Sequence record: KY499642.1
Reading direction: 5' to 3' (one strand)
DNA: 64,000 nt
How positions within the stretch are numbered: position 1 is the first letter of the stretch; each line of letters starts with the position of its first letter. A program made the position numbers and the translations under genes. Of the stretch, positions 7,611-61,944 are shown piece after piece. Under the pieces are notes generated by a model, which was not told where the DNA came from, did not search any database, and saw only the letters and a list, made by a program, of their open reading frames with translations.

Positions 7611-9137
7611 TTAGAAACCATCTAGACCGAATAGGTCGTCAGTCTCACCTGCAAGCGCGGCTGCGTTTACAGACTTAAGACTCAGGTCAACGTCCAAGTC
7701 AAAGTCCCATGGAAGGATGCCTGTGTCATTGAACTGTAGTACACGGTAGCGGTGTGCCATTGGTGTATCTACAAGCGTACGGTGCTTACCACGCTGTACT
7801 TCCAAGAATGAGTGCTCACCCATCTCAGTAATACCGAAGTACAATTCACCATCTGCTTCGTTATCGACAGTTGTACAACCATCGTAGTAACCTTTACCCG
7901 GAAGTTGACGAACGTACTTAGCAGGGTCAATTGCTTTTAGTTCTTTTGCTTTAGGGGAAAGCTGATGTGGTGCTAGAACTGCACACTTACGTGGCGAAGT
8001 GATGTTACGAACGATACGGTAAAGCTCACGAACATCAGAACCCGTTGCTCCTGTACCCAAACCCGCACGGTTGATTGTACCTAAGTAGTCAGGACGTAGA
8101 ACAACAACATGGTAGCCTAATGACTCGTAGTAAGCGAAACGTTCACGTAGCATAGCCGGAGTAAAGTCTGAGTTAATGTGGCGTTCAAACTTATATGTCC
8201 AACCGCGTTCAGCGAGTTTCTGACAAACGTACTTAGTTGCAGTCTTAGGATCGATGTCTTTAACGTTAGCAGGTTTCTTTTCGAAGTGGTCATGGATAGC
8301 CTTGTATGCAATCGGCATGTTCACTTCCAGTTCGTTCTCAAATGACAAGTCTAGCATCAGTGGCTTCTTGCCCTCAGGAACAAACATGTCAGGGTCATTG
8401 AACAGACCAAGACTTAAGAACGTCATTAGAGAGAACAACGTCTTAGCATTGTGTGGTAGTGCAGGCATTAGCCATAGCTCGCCCGGAACAATACCATCGT
8501 TGATACCCATCATGCGGTTGATGCCTTTCCAACCTGTCTTAAGTGTGGCACCTGCTAATTGCTTCTTGGTGTTCTCGAAGATGTTCTCCATTTCATCTGG
8601 AGTGTCAGTACCAACAGAAGCAACCAGAGTAGAACTTTTACCGTCAAGAGAGTTACGTGTAACTCGCGCTAACTCGTCTGATAATTTGGCAGCAATGTCA
8701 CGAAGGTTTGCGTCGCCTTCACGGTTGATACTATAAGAGGCCGTAGAGATGATCTTTCTTAGCTCTGAGCCGTTAATATAATGTTGCAAATGTGAGATGT
8801 TCGAAGAGATAGCATTCTTGATTTCATTGTCAGTTTCATACTTAACGTCGAACGCCTCTTTGACGCTTTCGTAGAAATGAGTGTCTAGTGAGCAATACAC
8901 GCGTATCTTTTGTAAGACAGTGTGATGGTCAAATTCTAGGTCGCCATTTGCCAAATCAACAACAAGAGTTTTAACTCCAGTTATTGCAGCATGGCCGTCG
9001 CCGTCCGATACGAAGTCGGGTGTGCGAATGTGTGTAGCTGTTTTCTTGATTAGGTTAGCGTAACTACCTTGCTCTCCAAGTTTCTTTTCAAGTAACAACA
9101 AAGTAAGACAGTTAACTAGTGCGATTTTCTCTTCCAT
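7611..9137 (-). CDS. dnaB: DnaB-like replicative helicase (phiKZ gp118-like)
   Basis: LKTGWKGINRM, variant Walker A PALPHNAKT, SFENE catalytic Glu, Walker B LRPDY, HQLS, EADGELY, RGKHR arginine finger; position next to capsid gene. Confidence 0.9.
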   Translation of the reverse strand: MEEKIALVNCLTLLLLEKKLGEQGSYANLIKKTATHIRTPDFVSDGDGHAAITGVKTLVVDLANGDLEFDHHTVLQKIRVYCSLDTHFYESVKEAFDVKYETDNEIKNAISSNISHLQHYINGSELRKIISTASYSINREGDANLRDIAAKLSDELARVTRNSLDGKSSTLVASVGTDTPDEMENIFENTKKQLAGATLKTGWKGINRMMGINDGIVPGELWLMPALPHNAKTLFSLMTFLSLGLFNDPDMFVPEGKKPLMLDLSFENELEVNMPIAYKAIHDHFEKKPANVKDIDPKTATKYVCQKLAERGWTYKFERHINSDFTPAMLRERFAYYESLGYHVVVLRPDYLGTINRAGLGTGATGSDVRELYRIVRNITSPRKCAVLAPHQLSPKAKELKAIDPAKYVRQLPGKGYYDGCTTVDNEADGELYFGITEMGEHSFLEVQRGKHRTLVDTPMAHRYRVLQFNDTGILPWDFDLDVDLSLKSVNAAALAGETDDLFGLDGF

Positions 9138-57675: not shown

Positions 57676-57704
57676 GAGGGACGTGACGTCCCTCATTCTT
57701 TTTT
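57676..57704 (+). terminator. Intrinsic terminator
   Basis: GAGGGACG-TGA-CGTCCCTC plus T run. Confidence 0.75.
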
Positions 57705-57718
57705 ATTTGGAGATAATC

Positions 57719-59038
57719 ATGAAACTACTTAAAGCAACATTCAATCGTGTTAACCTTACTCAAACTCCTGTTCGTTACCCAATGACGCCGGATGCGAATG
57801 CTGACGTATTCCAGTGTCTGAGTGAGATGCCGCTGCATCAACTTATGCAGGATAACTTTGGTGACATTAACGCTCTTGCAGAGCAGTTCGAAAAGGATGG
57901 TGTGTTCACACATCGTTACGGTGAAATGGAACCAACTGCTATCCCGTCTGTAGAGTTGGGTGTTGTTAATGCATTCGAGTTCTTTGTTGAGGTAATGCCA
58001 GAAACAGTATATTGCAAGCAATCCACCTACATGCATCTGCGTGGTTATGTCGAAGGCGAGCCTAATACACCTGAAGCAAAGTACCATGTTGTTTCAACTA
58101 TGACGTACAAGAAGGCTGCAAATGAAACCGCAATGCATTTGGTTGACAATGCACTATTCTGTCAAGATGTTGACCTTGATGCGCGTGCACTGCGAGCACG
58201 TGATGGTGTGTATGCCTACGAATCTCTACTGGAGGCAGCTGCTCTTGAAATTGATACCATGATAGATACACGCTCTTCATTCCACGTGGGTGTCCAAGCA
58301 TTCGAAGCGACAGAGGTAAGTCGTGCGCATTACTTAGCACGTTTAGTAATGGCAATCCTACAAAGTGAACAACATCCGCAGTGTGATAGCGTATTCGGTG
58401 TAGAAGGCAATCATTCATTGGTGTGTGATTACCTCAACTTCCCTAACATGGCATATCATCCAATCGTTCGCGAATTGCGCACCAAGAGTGGTGCAGCACA
58501 TCGCACGTTATGCCTTGATGATGATACACTGCGTCAACTATTTGATGGTGGATTAAGTGATGGATGTGAGCTGGAATTTAAAGACCTCATTAAGGTTCGT
58601 CCTGTGGCAGATGCTTGGGACCACTCTTTCGATTCTGTAGCAGCCTACACGATCATGCAGTACATGCATGGAGTAGTTGCAAACCTAGGTGTACAAACCC
58701 TGGAACTGGAGATTGATGAGAACGGTCCAGTCCAACCTAAGTACACGGTGATGCCTGAGATGGATAAAGGTGCACACACATATGCTGACATTAATAGTAT
58801 CGGTGAAGACATCTACGAACAGTTCGAATGCGCTCAACGTTCAGTGTTAGCACACATTGACTTTAACGTTAATGGAATTTCTACTGTAGAAGTAACCGTA
58901 GATGGTGGTGAAACTCGCGTCTTTGAATACGCAAGCTTTGCTTCTAGCTACTGCAACCCTCTGGTATCAAGAGACGCACAAAAGCCTCAAGAACTAGCAG
59001 AGATGTACAGAACAATTTGCGAAGTAATCGCACAATAA
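57719..59038 (+). CDS. Hypothetical protein, possibly a diverged paralogue of a phiKZ-like core protein
   Basis: 439 aa from ATG after GGAGATAA; FEFFVEV, LRGYVE, VTVDGGE..VFEYASFASSYCNPLV recall a roughly 500-aa phiKZ-like core hypothetical (memory only). Confidence 0.55.
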   Translation: MKLLKATFNRVNLTQTPVRYPMTPDANADVFQCLSEMPLHQLMQDNFGDINALAEQFEKDGVFTHRYGEMEPTAIPSVELGVVNAFEFFVEVMPETVYCKQSTYMHLRGYVEGEPNTPEAKYHVVSTMTYKKAANETAMHLVDNALFCQDVDLDARALRARDGVYAYESLLEAAALEIDTMIDTRSSFHVGVQAFEATEVSRAHYLARLVMAILQSEQHPQCDSVFGVEGNHSLVCDYLNFPNMAYHPIVRELRTKSGAAHRTLCLDDDTLRQLFDGGLSDGCELEFKDLIKVRPVADAWDHSFDSVAAYTIMQYMHGVVANLGVQTLELEIDENGPVQPKYTVMPEMDKGAHTYADINSIGEDIYEQFECAQRSVLAHIDFNVNGISTVEVTVDGGETRVFEYASFASSYCNPLVSRDAQKPQELAEMYRTICEVIAQ

Positions 59039-59052
59039 CGGAGATAATAAGA

Positions 59053-59721
59053 ATGACAACAGTACTATTCACTAAGGACAAAGTTTTCTGTGACACGCAG
59101 GTTACTCGCTGTAATGATGTGGCGAGTTTGGATTGCATCAAGTTCTTCCCGCTGTCAGATGGCTCTATTGCGTATGGGGCAGGTTCTCTTAGTGAGATTG
59201 TGGCGTCGGTTGCAATGTATGAAGGTATTGATGAAAAGCTACCAATAGAGCAATACATTACAGGTAGCGGTACGACACTAATCATTGTTAAGCCTAGTGG
59301 ATTCATCGACCGTTTTAAACCGAAGAGGAAGCCGCGTCGGGATACAGAGGCGGGCAGTTCTAAACCACGCACTCCAATATTGTTTTGGAAGGGGACAGAG
59401 CCTTACGTTGCAATAGGTAGCGGACGACCACATATCGAAGCACACTACACCTACGTTGACCATAATCCTAAGCGAGCAATGATAAATGCAGCAAAACGTG
59501 ATACAGGTACAGGTGATCGCATCTTTGAGCTACCACGACATTGGGAGAAAGGGGAATCTGTTGAGATTAAGTTCTATGACGGCTTCACACGTCGTGATAA
59601 GTACCGTAAGCCTATAACTATCACACTAGAGTTCCCTAAAGACCCTTCGTGGATTTATGATGCATTGGTCGGCAAACGTGACCTATACCCTATCAACCTT
59701 AAAGAAATAATCGGAGCGTAA
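59053..59721 (+). CDS. HslV/proteasome-beta-like Ntn-hydrolase (Thr protease)
   Basis: With start after GGAGATAA the N-terminus is M-T-T-V; FCDTQVT, IK, YGAG, VAIGSG, A.KRDTGTG match HslV/proteasome motifs. Confidence 0.75.
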   Translation: MTTVLFTKDKVFCDTQVTRCNDVASLDCIKFFPLSDGSIAYGAGSLSEIVASVAMYEGIDEKLPIEQYITGSGTTLIIVKPSGFIDRFKPKRKPRRDTEAGSSKPRTPILFWKGTEPYVAIGSGRPHIEAHYTYVDHNPKRAMINAAKRDTGTGDRIFELPRHWEKGESVEIKFYDGFTRRDKYRKPITITLEFPKDPSWIYDALVGKRDLYPINLKEIIGA

Positions 59722-59722
59722 G

Positions 59723-60562
59723 ATGTTCGACCACAAGCCAACTCAAATCAAAACACCATGGTCACAAGTAAATGAGCTGTTACATGGCGACGGTTTCTAT
59801 CCCGTAGGTCTTTGGCTACTACCTGTGATTAACCATGAACAGGTATATGACTTCTATGCGCATCTAATTGCTTCACAATCACATCTACTGGATGTGTCAG
59901 AACATCCTCGTCGTAATGATGACTTGAAATACACTATCTGTTATATGGATGCCTCGTCGCAATACGCGGGCGCTATGGATGCTAATGTGGCTCAATACAT
60001 CTCGGAACATACAGGTAAGCCTGTGGGTGACTTACCTGTTGACATCATTAACTACAATGAAGAAGCGTTTGGTGCGCGCGGTATTCGCTTTGTTAGTTGG
60101 CGACTATCGCGTTCGAACTCATTAGATGTTGCAGTGACTGGTATCGGCGACGGTTTGTTAAATGGTGGCTGCGATATGCGTATTTGCATCATTGACCGTG
60201 TTGGTTTAGATGAATATCATACTGAAACAGCACGCCGCATGTTACGTACTATCCGACAGTGGGCAGTCCAGAATCAAGTGCTGGTGTTAGTGAGTGCACC
60301 ACTCGACCCGGTACTTGTTCGTTACGACTCAGAGTTTGATGCACCACTTATTGACCGTTTCGAAGATAAGCAAATGGATCGTCTGTATTATCATAAAGCT
60401 ATCACGCAAGAAGCGGATGGTGAGCTGCTAATTGGACATAACGAGAAAGAGCAAGAGCTAGTTATTCGTCGCGGTAAGTTCCGTGGTGACTCTCGCCCTT
60501 ATGGTGAAGAAGTTCGCTTTGATTCATTAGTAGGGGAGTTTCCTGAATGGAACGCGAAGTAA
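59723..60562 (+). CDS. Truncated, degenerate paralogue of the phage DnaB helicase
   Basis: IKTPWSQVNELL..DGFYPVGLWLLP..NH and EADGELLIG...EL.IRRGKFR align with 7611-9137; Walker A Lys and catalytic Glu absent. Confidence 0.8.
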   Translation: MFDHKPTQIKTPWSQVNELLHGDGFYPVGLWLLPVINHEQVYDFYAHLIASQSHLLDVSEHPRRNDDLKYTICYMDASSQYAGAMDANVAQYISEHTGKPVGDLPVDIINYNEEAFGARGIRFVSWRLSRSNSLDVAVTGIGDGLLNGGCDMRICIIDRVGLDEYHTETARRMLRTIRQWAVQNQVLVLVSAPLDPVLVRYDSEFDAPLIDRFEDKQMDRLYYHKAITQEADGELLIGHNEKEQELVIRRGKFRGDSRPYGEEVRFDSLVGEFPEWNAK

Positions 60563-60720
60563 TGCGCTTGTATCTAGGTATTGAACGTAAACCTGAAAAC
60601 AGTACTATGTTACACGTGCATGTAGCTAAGAAACGTACGTCAGGTCCAAAGGTTAAAATCGTGAATGGTCACGCAATTGTGATCAGAGAACAAGGAGCTA
60701 ATAATGAATCCAGCAATTAA
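60547..60720 (+). CDS. 57-aa ORF resembling DnaB C-terminal H4 segment (absent from ORF track)
   Basis: GGGGAG SD; MEREVMRLYLGIERKPENSTMLHVHVAKKRTSGP...; fills gap between neighbours. Confidence 0.5.
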   Translation: MEREVMRLYLGIERKPENSTMLHVHVAKKRTSGPKVKIVNGHAIVIREQGANNESSN

Positions 60721-61210
60721 TGAAGCGTCTAAACGCATAGAGTTACCAGAAGACTTTAAACAGTCGTTAGCGTCTATGTCACATATCCGAGTTATTGGTC
60801 GTGGCAATAGCGGACGCAGCTTACTGGCACATGCCATTGCAAACTGGCTGATTGCGGGTCACAACTTCGTGAACAACGTGTTCATTGAAGACACAATGGG
60901 TAAAGAAGCATATGCCATGTTTAACGAGTCAGATAAGTACGACTTTGTATTGTTCGACAGCTGCATGTTGCGTAACTTCGACTACAACAAAACAAAACGT
61001 TCGGTATGTTGCGAGACACTATCGGTTGGTGTAAACACGGTGAACTGGCCTGCCACAGTAGCTGAGTTTGAAACACTACTGGCAGTTAAACTGGTACCGG
61101 GTTCAGTGTTCGTGTTTAACGATCACCATAACTCAGAGATTCATGTATGGTATCGTGGTTGTGAGCAGGGGCGTTCACACTTCACCTTCAAGAATCCATT
61201 CGTAGCATAA
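60704..61210 (+). CDS. Small degenerate P-loop-like protein, paralogue of 56064
   Basis: IRVIGRGNSGRS (GxxxxGRS), YDFVLFDSC; AAGGAG SD. Confidence 0.6.
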   Translation: MNPAINEASKRIELPEDFKQSLASMSHIRVIGRGNSGRSLLAHAIANWLIAGHNFVNNVFIEDTMGKEAYAMFNESDKYDFVLFDSCMLRNFDYNKTKRSVCCETLSVGVNTVNWPATVAEFETLLAVKLVPGSVFVFNDHHNSEIHVWYRGCEQGRSHFTFKNPFVA

Positions 61211-61218
61211 CAACATAA

Positions 61219-61246
61219 GGGGTAGTTCGCTACCCCATCTTTATTT
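61219..61246 (+). terminator. Probable terminator
   Basis: GGGGTAG-TTCG-CTACCCC then ATCTTTATTT. Confidence 0.7.
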
Positions 61247-61916: not shown

Positions 61917-61944
61917 AGGAGAACTTCGGTTCTCCTATTTTTTT
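61917..61944 (+). terminator. Intrinsic terminator
   Basis: AGGAGAAC-TTCG-GTTCTCCT-AT7. Confidence 0.85.

Follow-up and report, generated by a model that had tools for sequence, protein, structure and literature searches.

A truncated, ATPase-dead paralogue of the replicative helicase of jumbo phage pVa-21 that keeps the arginine finger

We describe pVa21_077, a protein of Vibrio phage pVa-21, as a truncated paralogue of the ATPase domain of the phage's own replicative helicase, in which the site for hydrolysis of adenosine triphosphate (ATP) is dead, the arginine finger is retained and the gene is maintained by selection, and of this we are very nearly certain. The gene lies in a window of 64,000 nucleotides that is identical to bases 1-64000 of the pVa-21 genome (KY499642.1, 232 kb), pVa-21 being a phiKZ-like jumbo phage that infects Vibrio alginolyticus (PMC6472347), and an earlier note on this DNA had already read it as a catalytically disabled second copy of the helicase. 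On the pattern of residues lost and kept we further propose, as a tentative model that we place a little below even confidence, that the protein may be a dead pseudo-subunit that docks on the helicase through its finger face and acts there as a loader, a seam cap or a brake. No description of such a protein was found in the literature searched. The two genes on which the analysis turns are as follows.

59723..60562 (stop codon included), plus strand: pVa21_077, helicase ATPase-domain paralogue, 279 residues, annotated "hypothetical protein"
7611..9137, minus strand: divergent DnaB-like replicative helicase, 508 residues, PF20307 and phrog_3213

Homology and fold of pVa21_077

The pVa21_077 reading frame starts with an ATG codon that has GGAG 9 nt upstream, and it lies 51 kb from the helicase gene. 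Direct comparison of the two proteins by BLASTP returns two collinear segments (E 5e-5 and 2e-4, as a single comparison). At the level of profiles, hhalign sets a 4-sequence family alignment against 28 helicases with a probability of 97.1% (E 6.7e-11, 241 columns), and the 6-sequence family alignment with a probability of 97.6% (E 3.1e-12, score 93, 262 columns), residues 7-278 of the query being matched to residues 197-479 of the helicase. Against this score of 93, the reversed alignment reaches 17 and the best of 20 column shuffles 25. The motif blocks on which the earlier note had built its alignment by eye are present in both sequences, and the relationship it drew from them proves significant by pairwise and profile comparison alike. 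Searches from single sequences fare differently: pVa21_077 and all 6 family members are without a Pfam match at E<=1 and leave the gathering threshold of PF20307 (26 bits) unmet, our own helicase hidden Markov model gives the 6 members 1.5-22.6 bits, and phmmer with pVa21_077 against 1.84 billion representative proteins recovers four family members only and does not see the helicase. No match to pVa21_077 was found in NCBIfam or among PDB sequences, and its one PHROG match is to phrog_22250, of unknown function (E 0.003). pVa21_077 is thus a true, very remote homologue of the phage helicase ATPase domain, and one that the Pfam model does not place in PF20307.

Structure prediction gives a consistent picture. 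A first model, made from the 4-sequence family alignment, was unusable, with a predicted local distance difference test (pLDDT) of 46.7, and was replaced by an AlphaFold model from a mixed alignment of family and helicase sequences (pLDDT 91, predicted template modelling score 0.91). As helicases dominate the mixed alignment, this model was compared with the independent BFVD model of pVa21_077 (A0A1S6L1Q6), and the two agree with a template modelling (TM) score of 0.98 and a root-mean-square deviation of 1.3 Å. The next-nearest viral structures in BFVD are chimallivirus-type helicases of 511-521 residues, with a TM score of ~0.74 on the query. Foldseek against the PDB gives as best matches T4 gp41, archaeal RadA, RAD51 paralogues, E. 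coli and V. cholerae DnaB, KaiC-CI and T7 gp4, with a probability of 1.00 to T4 gp41, DnaB, T7 gp4, RadA and KaiC. These matches indicate that pVa21_077 adopts, in its predicted form, a DnaB-type RecA-like domain.

The full-length helicase of pVa-21

The comparison partner itself is unambiguous, as it matches the Pfam family PF20307, "Divergent DnaB-like ATPase", at E 1.4e-131 (438.8 bits) and PHROG 3213, "DnaB-like replicative helicase". The earlier note had called it dnaB at 7611-9137, for which the coordinates are right and the canonical name is not: the gene is of the divergent PF20307 type and lies on the minus strand. This helicase type defines the "group 1", or phiKZ-like, jumbo phages (Iyer et al. 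2021, PMC7824862), and by tblastn it is present in 288 phage records. Every ATPase motif of the pVa-21 helicase is intact, and its N-terminal domain, linker and acidic C-terminal tail are all present. Its Walker A (A-L-P-H-N-A-K-T), Walker B (D-Y-L-G) and sensor (P-H-Q-L-S) motifs were anchored on Geobacillus DnaB structures, where P-H-Q-L-S aligns with the DnaB L-S-Q-L-S and D350 with the DnaB Walker B residue.

Three further observations concern the helicase alone or its relatives. The acidic tail, encoded at 7611-7680 on the minus strand, ends in an aromatic residue (...E-T-D-D-L-F-G-L-D-G-F) and has no equivalent in the paralogue; it is reminiscent of the acidic, Phe-terminated tails of T7 gp4 and gp2.5, which contact the polymerase. 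In Aeromonas phage AP1 (MT713136.1, Straboviridae; locus L008, 2989-4065), a 358-residue open reading frame annotated "putative virion structural protein" matches helicase residues 304-453, from Walker B to the arginine finger, over its first ~155 residues (E 2e-9), which gives it the look of a piece of helicase or a helicase fusion, unless the T4-like record is itself a chimeric assembly. Finally, two clear PF20307 helicases in our set, P0010 and P0052, carry the JGI names "ribosomal protein S20" and "CRISPR/Cas system CSM-associated protein Csm2 small subunit", which look like annotation errors at the source.

Motifs lost and motifs kept

Residues lost and kept were tabulated at the positions that are 100% conserved in 62 helicases, in comparison with 6 paralogues (68 sequences in total), and hhalign and MAFFT concur on the key motif columns. 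The elements of pVa21_077 that matter to this comparison are listed here.

59822..59848, plus strand: pseudo-P-loop, residues 34-42 (P-V-I-N-H-E-Q-V-Y), replacing the helicase Walker A P-A-L-P-H-N-A-K-T
59951..59980, plus strand: former catalytic-Glu loop, residues 77-86, following strand 2, at the place of S-F-E-N-E in the helicase
60176..60196, plus strand: strand 4 with the Walker B-type D158, aligned with helicase D350
60284..60310, plus strand: strand 5 and the turn after it, residues 188-196, at the place of the helicase sensor motif P-H-Q-L-S-P
60407..60484, plus strand: retained trans face, residues 229-254, made up of the E-A-D-G-E-L strand and a beta-hairpin whose last residues are R-R-G-K-x-R
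60533..60553, plus strand: C-terminal motif G-E-F-P-E-W-D/N, homologous to the helicase G-I-L-P-W-D

The cis-acting half of the ATPase site has been dismantled. Both residues of the Walker A Lys-Thr pair, K232 and T233, are replaced (V41 and Y42), the Lys column reading V/V/V/V/M/S and the Thr column Y/Y/Q/Q/A/Q across the family, and the catalytic E267 has become S79 in a column that reads S/A/K/K/Y/E, so that the losses named in the earlier note are borne out, at positions that vary among the members. The pseudo-P-loop contains no Gly, Lys or Thr, it places Gln or His where a small residue is required before the Lys, and it has gained an acidic residue at position 39 (E39/D39) in all six members; canonical nucleotide binding is excluded with some confidence. 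The alignment of the catalytic-Glu loop is less certain, still leaving no conserved acidic residue anywhere within residues 77-85, and one metagenomic member (P0002, 79-82% identity) carries a 10-residue insertion there (columns 78-87 of alignment A1), which is consistent with a loop free of catalytic constraint. The earlier list of losses, correct as far as it went, was incomplete, as the sensor Gln and a Gly of the DNA-channel loop have gone as well: sensor Q392 is replaced by P193 (column P/P/P/P/P/I) and the sensor Ser by Asp, Cys, Thr or Val. Altogether the helicase positions lost are E220, K232, N247, E267, Y351, G366, P390, Q392, S394 and G416, the last of these in the DNA-channel loop.

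The truncation is equally clear, since pVa21_077 starts 8 residues before the K-T-P-W motif and thereby is without the N-terminal domain, the linker helix and the acidic C-terminal tail. About 196 N-terminal residues of the helicase, including the helical domain and the linker helix, are absent from the alignments, as the earlier note had said of the N-terminal domain; its description of that domain as primase-binding was an assumption, no primase having been identified in chimalliviruses (PMC13648687). The isoelectric point of the paralogue is 5.1 as opposed to 7.9 for the equivalent part of the helicase.

What has been kept is concentrated on the face that in DnaB-type rings is turned toward the ATP site of the neighbour, where the E-A-D-G-E strand, the R-G-K-x-R hairpin and the C-terminal P-E-W-D motif are preserved almost unchanged. 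The retained positions are D350 (in 5 of the 6 members, D158 in pVa21_077), R374, D429 and E431 of the E-A-D-G-E strand, R449, G450, K451, R453 and D478; the Walker B Asp and the K-x-R finger, the latter in all six, are therefore conserved as the earlier note had claimed. Helicase G450-K451-x-R453 corresponds to G251-K252-x-R254, and these are the sole columns that are invariant in 68 of the 68 sequences of both families. In DnaB-type domains this Lys is the "piston" and this Arg the arginine finger, both acting on the ATP site of the neighbouring protomer (PMC5512693). The family consensus is 41-42% identical to the helicase over residues 229-279, as against 12-25% in every other segment, and this stretch, which comprises the face turned toward the neighbour's site (residues 229-257) and the C-terminal tail (258-279), is also the best conserved within the family.

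Retention of the Walker B Asp in five of six members, together with conservation of the pocket region within the family, leaves some room for pVa21_077 to be an enzyme still, with a non-canonical nucleotide site or some other catalysis in the old pocket. Set against this are the absence of the Lys, the Thr and the loop Gly, the presence of an acidic residue and a bulky Gln or His in the anion hole, the loss of both the catalytic Glu and the sensor Gln, and the insertion that one member tolerates at the catalytic-Glu loop, and we regard continued catalysis as very improbable.

Family, selection and origin

The paralogue belongs to a small family made up of two isolates, pVa-21 and Vibrio phage pVp-JHP1101, and five metagenome-derived proteins, with a sponge metagenome among the samples. 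pVp-JHP1101 has an intact 279-residue copy of 81% identity in the same place, and the metagenomic copies are intact at 79-82%, 50%, 50% and 39-40% identity, with a 253-residue relative at 25-27%. Reading frames of 253-289 residues are uninterrupted in all lineages, counting five complete copies and the sixth full-length relative. The ratio of nonsynonymous to synonymous substitution rates (dN/dS), by the Nei-Gojobori method, is 0.078 in comparison with pVp-JHP1101, where dS is 1.45 and near saturation, and 0.13-0.25 in comparison with more distant copies, within the range of its neighbours (0.05-0.26). pVa21_077 is kept by purifying selection.

These data dispose of the possibility that the gene is a decaying duplicate or that its resemblance to the helicase is due to chance. 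Such a reading could appeal to the failure of phmmer and Pfam to link pVa21_077 to the helicase, but it has to contend with frames that stay open down to 25-27% identity at a dN/dS of 0.08-0.25, with a profile score far above that of the shuffled controls and with a DnaB-type fold in two independent models. We give it hardly any probability, and in both its forms it is refuted by the dN/dS values and the profile-profile controls; the earlier note had itself named decay as an alternative, and the complete homologues are all intact.

The distribution of the family is narrow. A profile search of a set of 5.8 billion proteins returned nothing beyond the six members, scanning of IMG/VR, JGI metagenome contigs and GTDB genomes with family patterns gave no confirmed relative, and the highly conserved neighbour 084, used as a probe for syntenic loci, found none in IMG/VR or JGI. 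By tblastn, 075 and 076, the two genes upstream of the paralogue, were found in pVa-21 and pVp-JHP1101 only, which reveals no positional orthologue in other chimalliviruses by this route, whereas the prohead protease also reached other chimalliviruses. Both complete genomes with the paralogue encode the helicase as well. pVa21_077 is therefore accessory to the pVa-21 lineage and does not belong to the chimallivirus core.

The six paralogues are monophyletic in a maximum-likelihood tree (support 99/100). Their branch, of ~8 substitutions per site, joins the helicases at an unresolved base, and as a consequence a recent duplication is inseparable from an old one and the age of the event cannot be read from the tree. 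Between pVa-21 and pVp-JHP1101 the paralogue is also the faster evolving of the two proteins, at 81% identity as opposed to 95-99% for the helicase.

Genomic context

pVa21_077 sits within a short run of genes on the plus strand, the features of which are as follows.

57676..57694, plus strand: terminator-like G+C hairpin and T run, closing the upstream unit and forming the left boundary of genes 075-079
57719..59038, plus strand: pVa21_075, phrog_3141 (unknown function), first gene of the 075-079 unit
59053..59721, plus strand: pVa21_076, HslV-family peptidase homologue, 222 residues, phrog_1040 (E 1e-38)
60547..60720, plus strand: pVa21_078, basic protein of 57 residues, overlapping the last 16 nt of pVa21_077
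60704..61210, plus strand: pVa21_079, 168 residues, with G-R-G-N-S-G-R-S, which resembles a P-loop but has Arg in place of the usual Lys, and with a hydrophobic strand that terminates in Asp
61219..61236, plus strand: terminator-like hairpin and T run after gene 079, forming the right boundary of genes 075-079

Genes 075-079 form, as read from the sequence, one predicted transcription unit bracketed by the terminator-like hairpins of the list above. Those two hairpins and a third at 61917-61936 are strong and carry T runs, the first two being predicted on both strands; terminator-like sites number 11 observed against 5.1 expected, and the long run of same-strand genes is split into short units. 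The prohead protease gene lies ~3 kb downstream of pVa21_077.

Within the unit, the stop codon of 076 is 1 nt before the ATG of pVa21_077 and the two genes are translationally coupled. The annotated 076 product starts Met-Thr-Thr, from which removal of the Met would leave an N-terminal Thr, as in Ntn-hydrolase proteases; no Pfam match and no PDB sequence match was found for it. As 076 and 077 together (222 + 279 residues) approach the length of the helicase, a split helicase was considered and rejected, 076 being in another frame, with a BLASTP E of 1.4 to the helicase and a match to an HslV-family PHROG. In relatives that have no gene 076, gene 075 is directly upstream of the paralogue, and in the relatives at loci L003 and L004 the HslV-like gene does not adjoin it.

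Downstream, a gene of the 078 type is directly 3' of the paralogue in all four genomic contexts examined. These proteins are of 57-65 residues, basic and conserved, with the core motif V-K-I-V-N-G-H-A, and in pVa-21 the ribosome-binding site (GGGGAG) and ATG of 078 are embedded in the conserved V-G-E-F-P-E-W codons of the paralogue. 078 is probably coupled to the paralogue in translation and may be its partner protein. Gene 079, for its part, shows weak matches alone (nSTAND3, E 0.027; PADLOC mad8, E 0.002), and was considered and rejected as a loader partner of the AAA type, being beside the paralogue in pVa-21 and pVp-JHP1101 but not in the metagenomic relatives. In pVp-JHP1101 (pVp-JHP1101_081, L002 6988-7506) and in one further locus (L006, 1737-2231) an extra gene for 164-172 residues lies between the small reading frame and the next gene, and pVa-21 has none, which marks the stretch just 3' of the paralogue-078 pair as a variable cassette.

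The company that the paralogue keeps is one ground for the main rival to a helicase-directed role, namely that pVa21_077 has become a scaffold independent of the helicase, assembling as a nucleotide-free ring or filament in which the K-x-R finger of one subunit pairs with the acidic pseudo-P-loop of the next, with 078, 075 or 076 as partner, and in the case of 076 as an ATP-independent ring partner of the peptidase. Conservation of both faces within the family fits this arrangement, as does the acidic residue shared by 6 of 6 members at position 39. The paralogue is always found with an overlapping 078 and with 075 upstream, and in most contexts with 076; its unit is distant from the helicase gene and has terminators of its own; and RecA-like domains, to judge from the RadA and KaiC-CI fold matches, readily form rings without an N-terminal domain. 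In addition, the phage nucleus of Erwinia phage RAY takes in gp116, an accessory protein of the HslUV family (PMC10299810). What speaks against the scaffold is that the finger face is far closer in sequence to the helicase than the remainder of the protein is, which is most easily explained if the partner is still a helicase-type P-loop face, that the HslV-like gene is not beside the paralogue at L003 and L004, and that no alternative partner is in evidence. We consider a helicase-independent scaffold unlikely, while counting it as the most serious competitor.

A model for pVa21_077 as a helicase pseudo-subunit

The model that we propose is that pVa21_077 would act as a pseudo-subunit of the phage helicase, because the cis site is destroyed, the residue of the DNA channel is lost, the trans face is retained and the elements that tether a DnaB subunit into its ring are gone. 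Such a subunit would be incapable of ATP hydrolysis or of translocation. An opened DnaB-type ring is a spiral in which a single P-loop face and a single finger face are left free, and the retained finger face of pVa21_077 could dock on the P-loop face that a helicase subunit exposes at the open ring or at the spiral seam. Known loaders target an element of the C-terminal domain together with the linker helix of the neighbouring subunit (PMC6391071). Having the C-terminal domain only, pVa21_077 could accept a linker helix and never donate one, which suggests that, instead of joining the ring as a stable member, it would cap the helicase or keep it open. The effect would be either to open the ring for loading or to brake the motor. 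It may be speculated that the acidic P-loop residue E39 could accept the K-x-R finger of a neighbour without nucleotide. In its most detailed form, the model has a loader or seam cap whose K-x-R finger would enter the ATP site of the helicase subunit at one end of the open ring, the last, while its acidic P-loop, as a "phosphate mimic", would receive the finger of the subunit at the other end, the first; it would accept but not donate a linker helix, the ring thereby being held open for entry of single-stranded DNA or the motor arrested late in infection. Specified to this degree the model is distinctly unlikely to be right in every part. The more general suggestion of the earlier note, that the protein could complete a neighbour's site and serve as a dominant-negative regulator, loader or decoy, is plausible on sequence grounds.

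Several observations weigh against a role on the helicase. The beta-hairpin that carries the finger is also a core structural element whose conservation may reflect folding, and the equivalent K and R of RadA have a further effect, on binding of single-stranded DNA (PMC5512693), so that retention of K-x-R need not mean catalysis in trans. Part of the conservation of the C-terminal motif is a dual-coding constraint, because the start signals of 078 overlap it, and the most distant member has Pro in place of the Walker B Asp. pVa21_077 lies outside any replication-gene cluster: its unit otherwise encodes an HslV-like peptidase and proteins of unknown function, and head-morphogenesis genes follow. 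Furthermore, the paralogue is missing from all of the remaining 286 phage records with a PF20307-type helicase, and in BFVD no protein of similar size from other chimalliviruses ranks above the full-length helicases; being confined to a few pVa-21-like marine phages, it cannot be a general chimallivirus loader.

A finger face with no working site of its own might also be directed at the host, pVa21_077 acting as a poison that inserts into host DnaB or another RecA-like ring to stop host replication, or as a decoy that baits a host defence sensing the phage helicase. Single dead subunits are reported to poison ring helicases in mixing experiments with T7 gp4, the K-x-R finger and the fold are common to the bacterial DnaB structures of E. 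coli and V. cholerae, and, like many genes engaged in conflict, the family is accessory, fast-evolving and restricted to one clade. The motifs that it shares (K-T-P-W, L-W-L-L-P, E-A-D-G-E-L, R-G-K-x-R and P-E-W-D) nevertheless match the phage-type helicase and not canonical DnaB, no Pfam or NCBIfam model is matched, those of canonical DnaB included, a dN/dS of 0.08 denotes conservative and not diversifying evolution, and no defence or anti-defence model in PADLOC matches the paralogue. We therefore rate a decoy or poison as improbable. A paper on the defence system Avs5 and jumbo phages was considered in this connection and set aside, as it concerns a different, early protein, JADA.

Comparison with known systems

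The closest comparison for the proposed pseudo-subunit remains the PF20307 helicase, with which it shares a genome, a predicted fold, homology over helicase residues 197-479 and the motifs K-T-[GP]-W, L-W-L-[ML]-P, E-A-D-G-E, R-G-K-x-R and P-[E]-W-D; it differs in having no N-terminal domain, linker helix or acidic tail, in the loss of the cis motifs and of the DNA-loop Gly, and in its restriction to pVa-21-like phages. Among phage proteins of the DnaB family, the mycobacteriophage DnaB homologues (PMC4523182) likewise appear to consist of the RecA core alone with no N-terminal domain; the title of the paper announces the biochemical characterisation of a DnaB orthologue. pVa21_077, for its part, has lost its catalytic motifs and co-exists with a full-length helicase.

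The logic of an inactive subunit that is kept for its neighbour's sake has precedents. The delta-prime subunit of the E. coli clamp loader and the non-catalytic subunits of the F1- and V1-ATPases are inactive paralogues that keep a trans-acting arginine, and pVa21_077 follows the same pattern of losing its own catalysis while retaining the residue that completes a neighbouring site. These proteins are of other folds and families (AAA+ and F1 alpha/beta), and their assembly has been demonstrated whereas that of pVa21_077 is inferred. They are, moreover, stoichiometric members of their rings, whereas pVa21_077 is without the tethers of a DnaB subunit, the N-terminal collar and the linker helix. 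Nearer in fold are the RAD51 paralogue complexes BCDX2, CX3 and Shu, in which RecA-fold paralogues, some of them ATPase-deficient, bind the end of an oligomer of the active paralogue through the normal protomer interface; indeed, RAD51-paralogue structures (9q2a, 9svx, 8gbj and 8ouy) are among the top fold matches of pVa21_077. Those complexes differ in that they cap or remodel recombinase filaments and are eukaryotic, and no specific sequence relationship links them to pVa21_077.

In its proposed role pVa21_077 would resemble the helicase loaders DnaC/DnaI, lambda P, DciA and T4 gp59, as loaders grip the C-terminal domain and linker helix and hold the ring open (PMC6391071). It shows no homology to any of them in Pfam, PHROGs, NCBIfam or PDB sequences, and no loader is known to have arisen from a helicase's own ATPase domain.

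Significance

Reconstitution of replication in chimalliviruses, the nucleus-forming jumbo phages, is only beginning. Their polymerase and clamp have been described in 2026 preprints, in which no primase is identified and no loader of the DnaB-like helicase is named (PMC13648687, PMC13648698). An ATPase-dead copy of the helicase that keeps its trans face offers a probe of how the chimallivirus helicase is assembled and controlled. The reach of the finding is limited to a small clade of marine Vibrio phages, where the paralogue is an accessory elaboration and not part of the core chimallivirus replisome. Should the model be true, DnaB-type ring helicases would join the oligomeric ATPases that have evolved pseudo-subunits, and pVa21_077 would become the first case of a helicase giving rise to its own loader or regulator, providing an entry to the loading step of the chimallivirus replisome.

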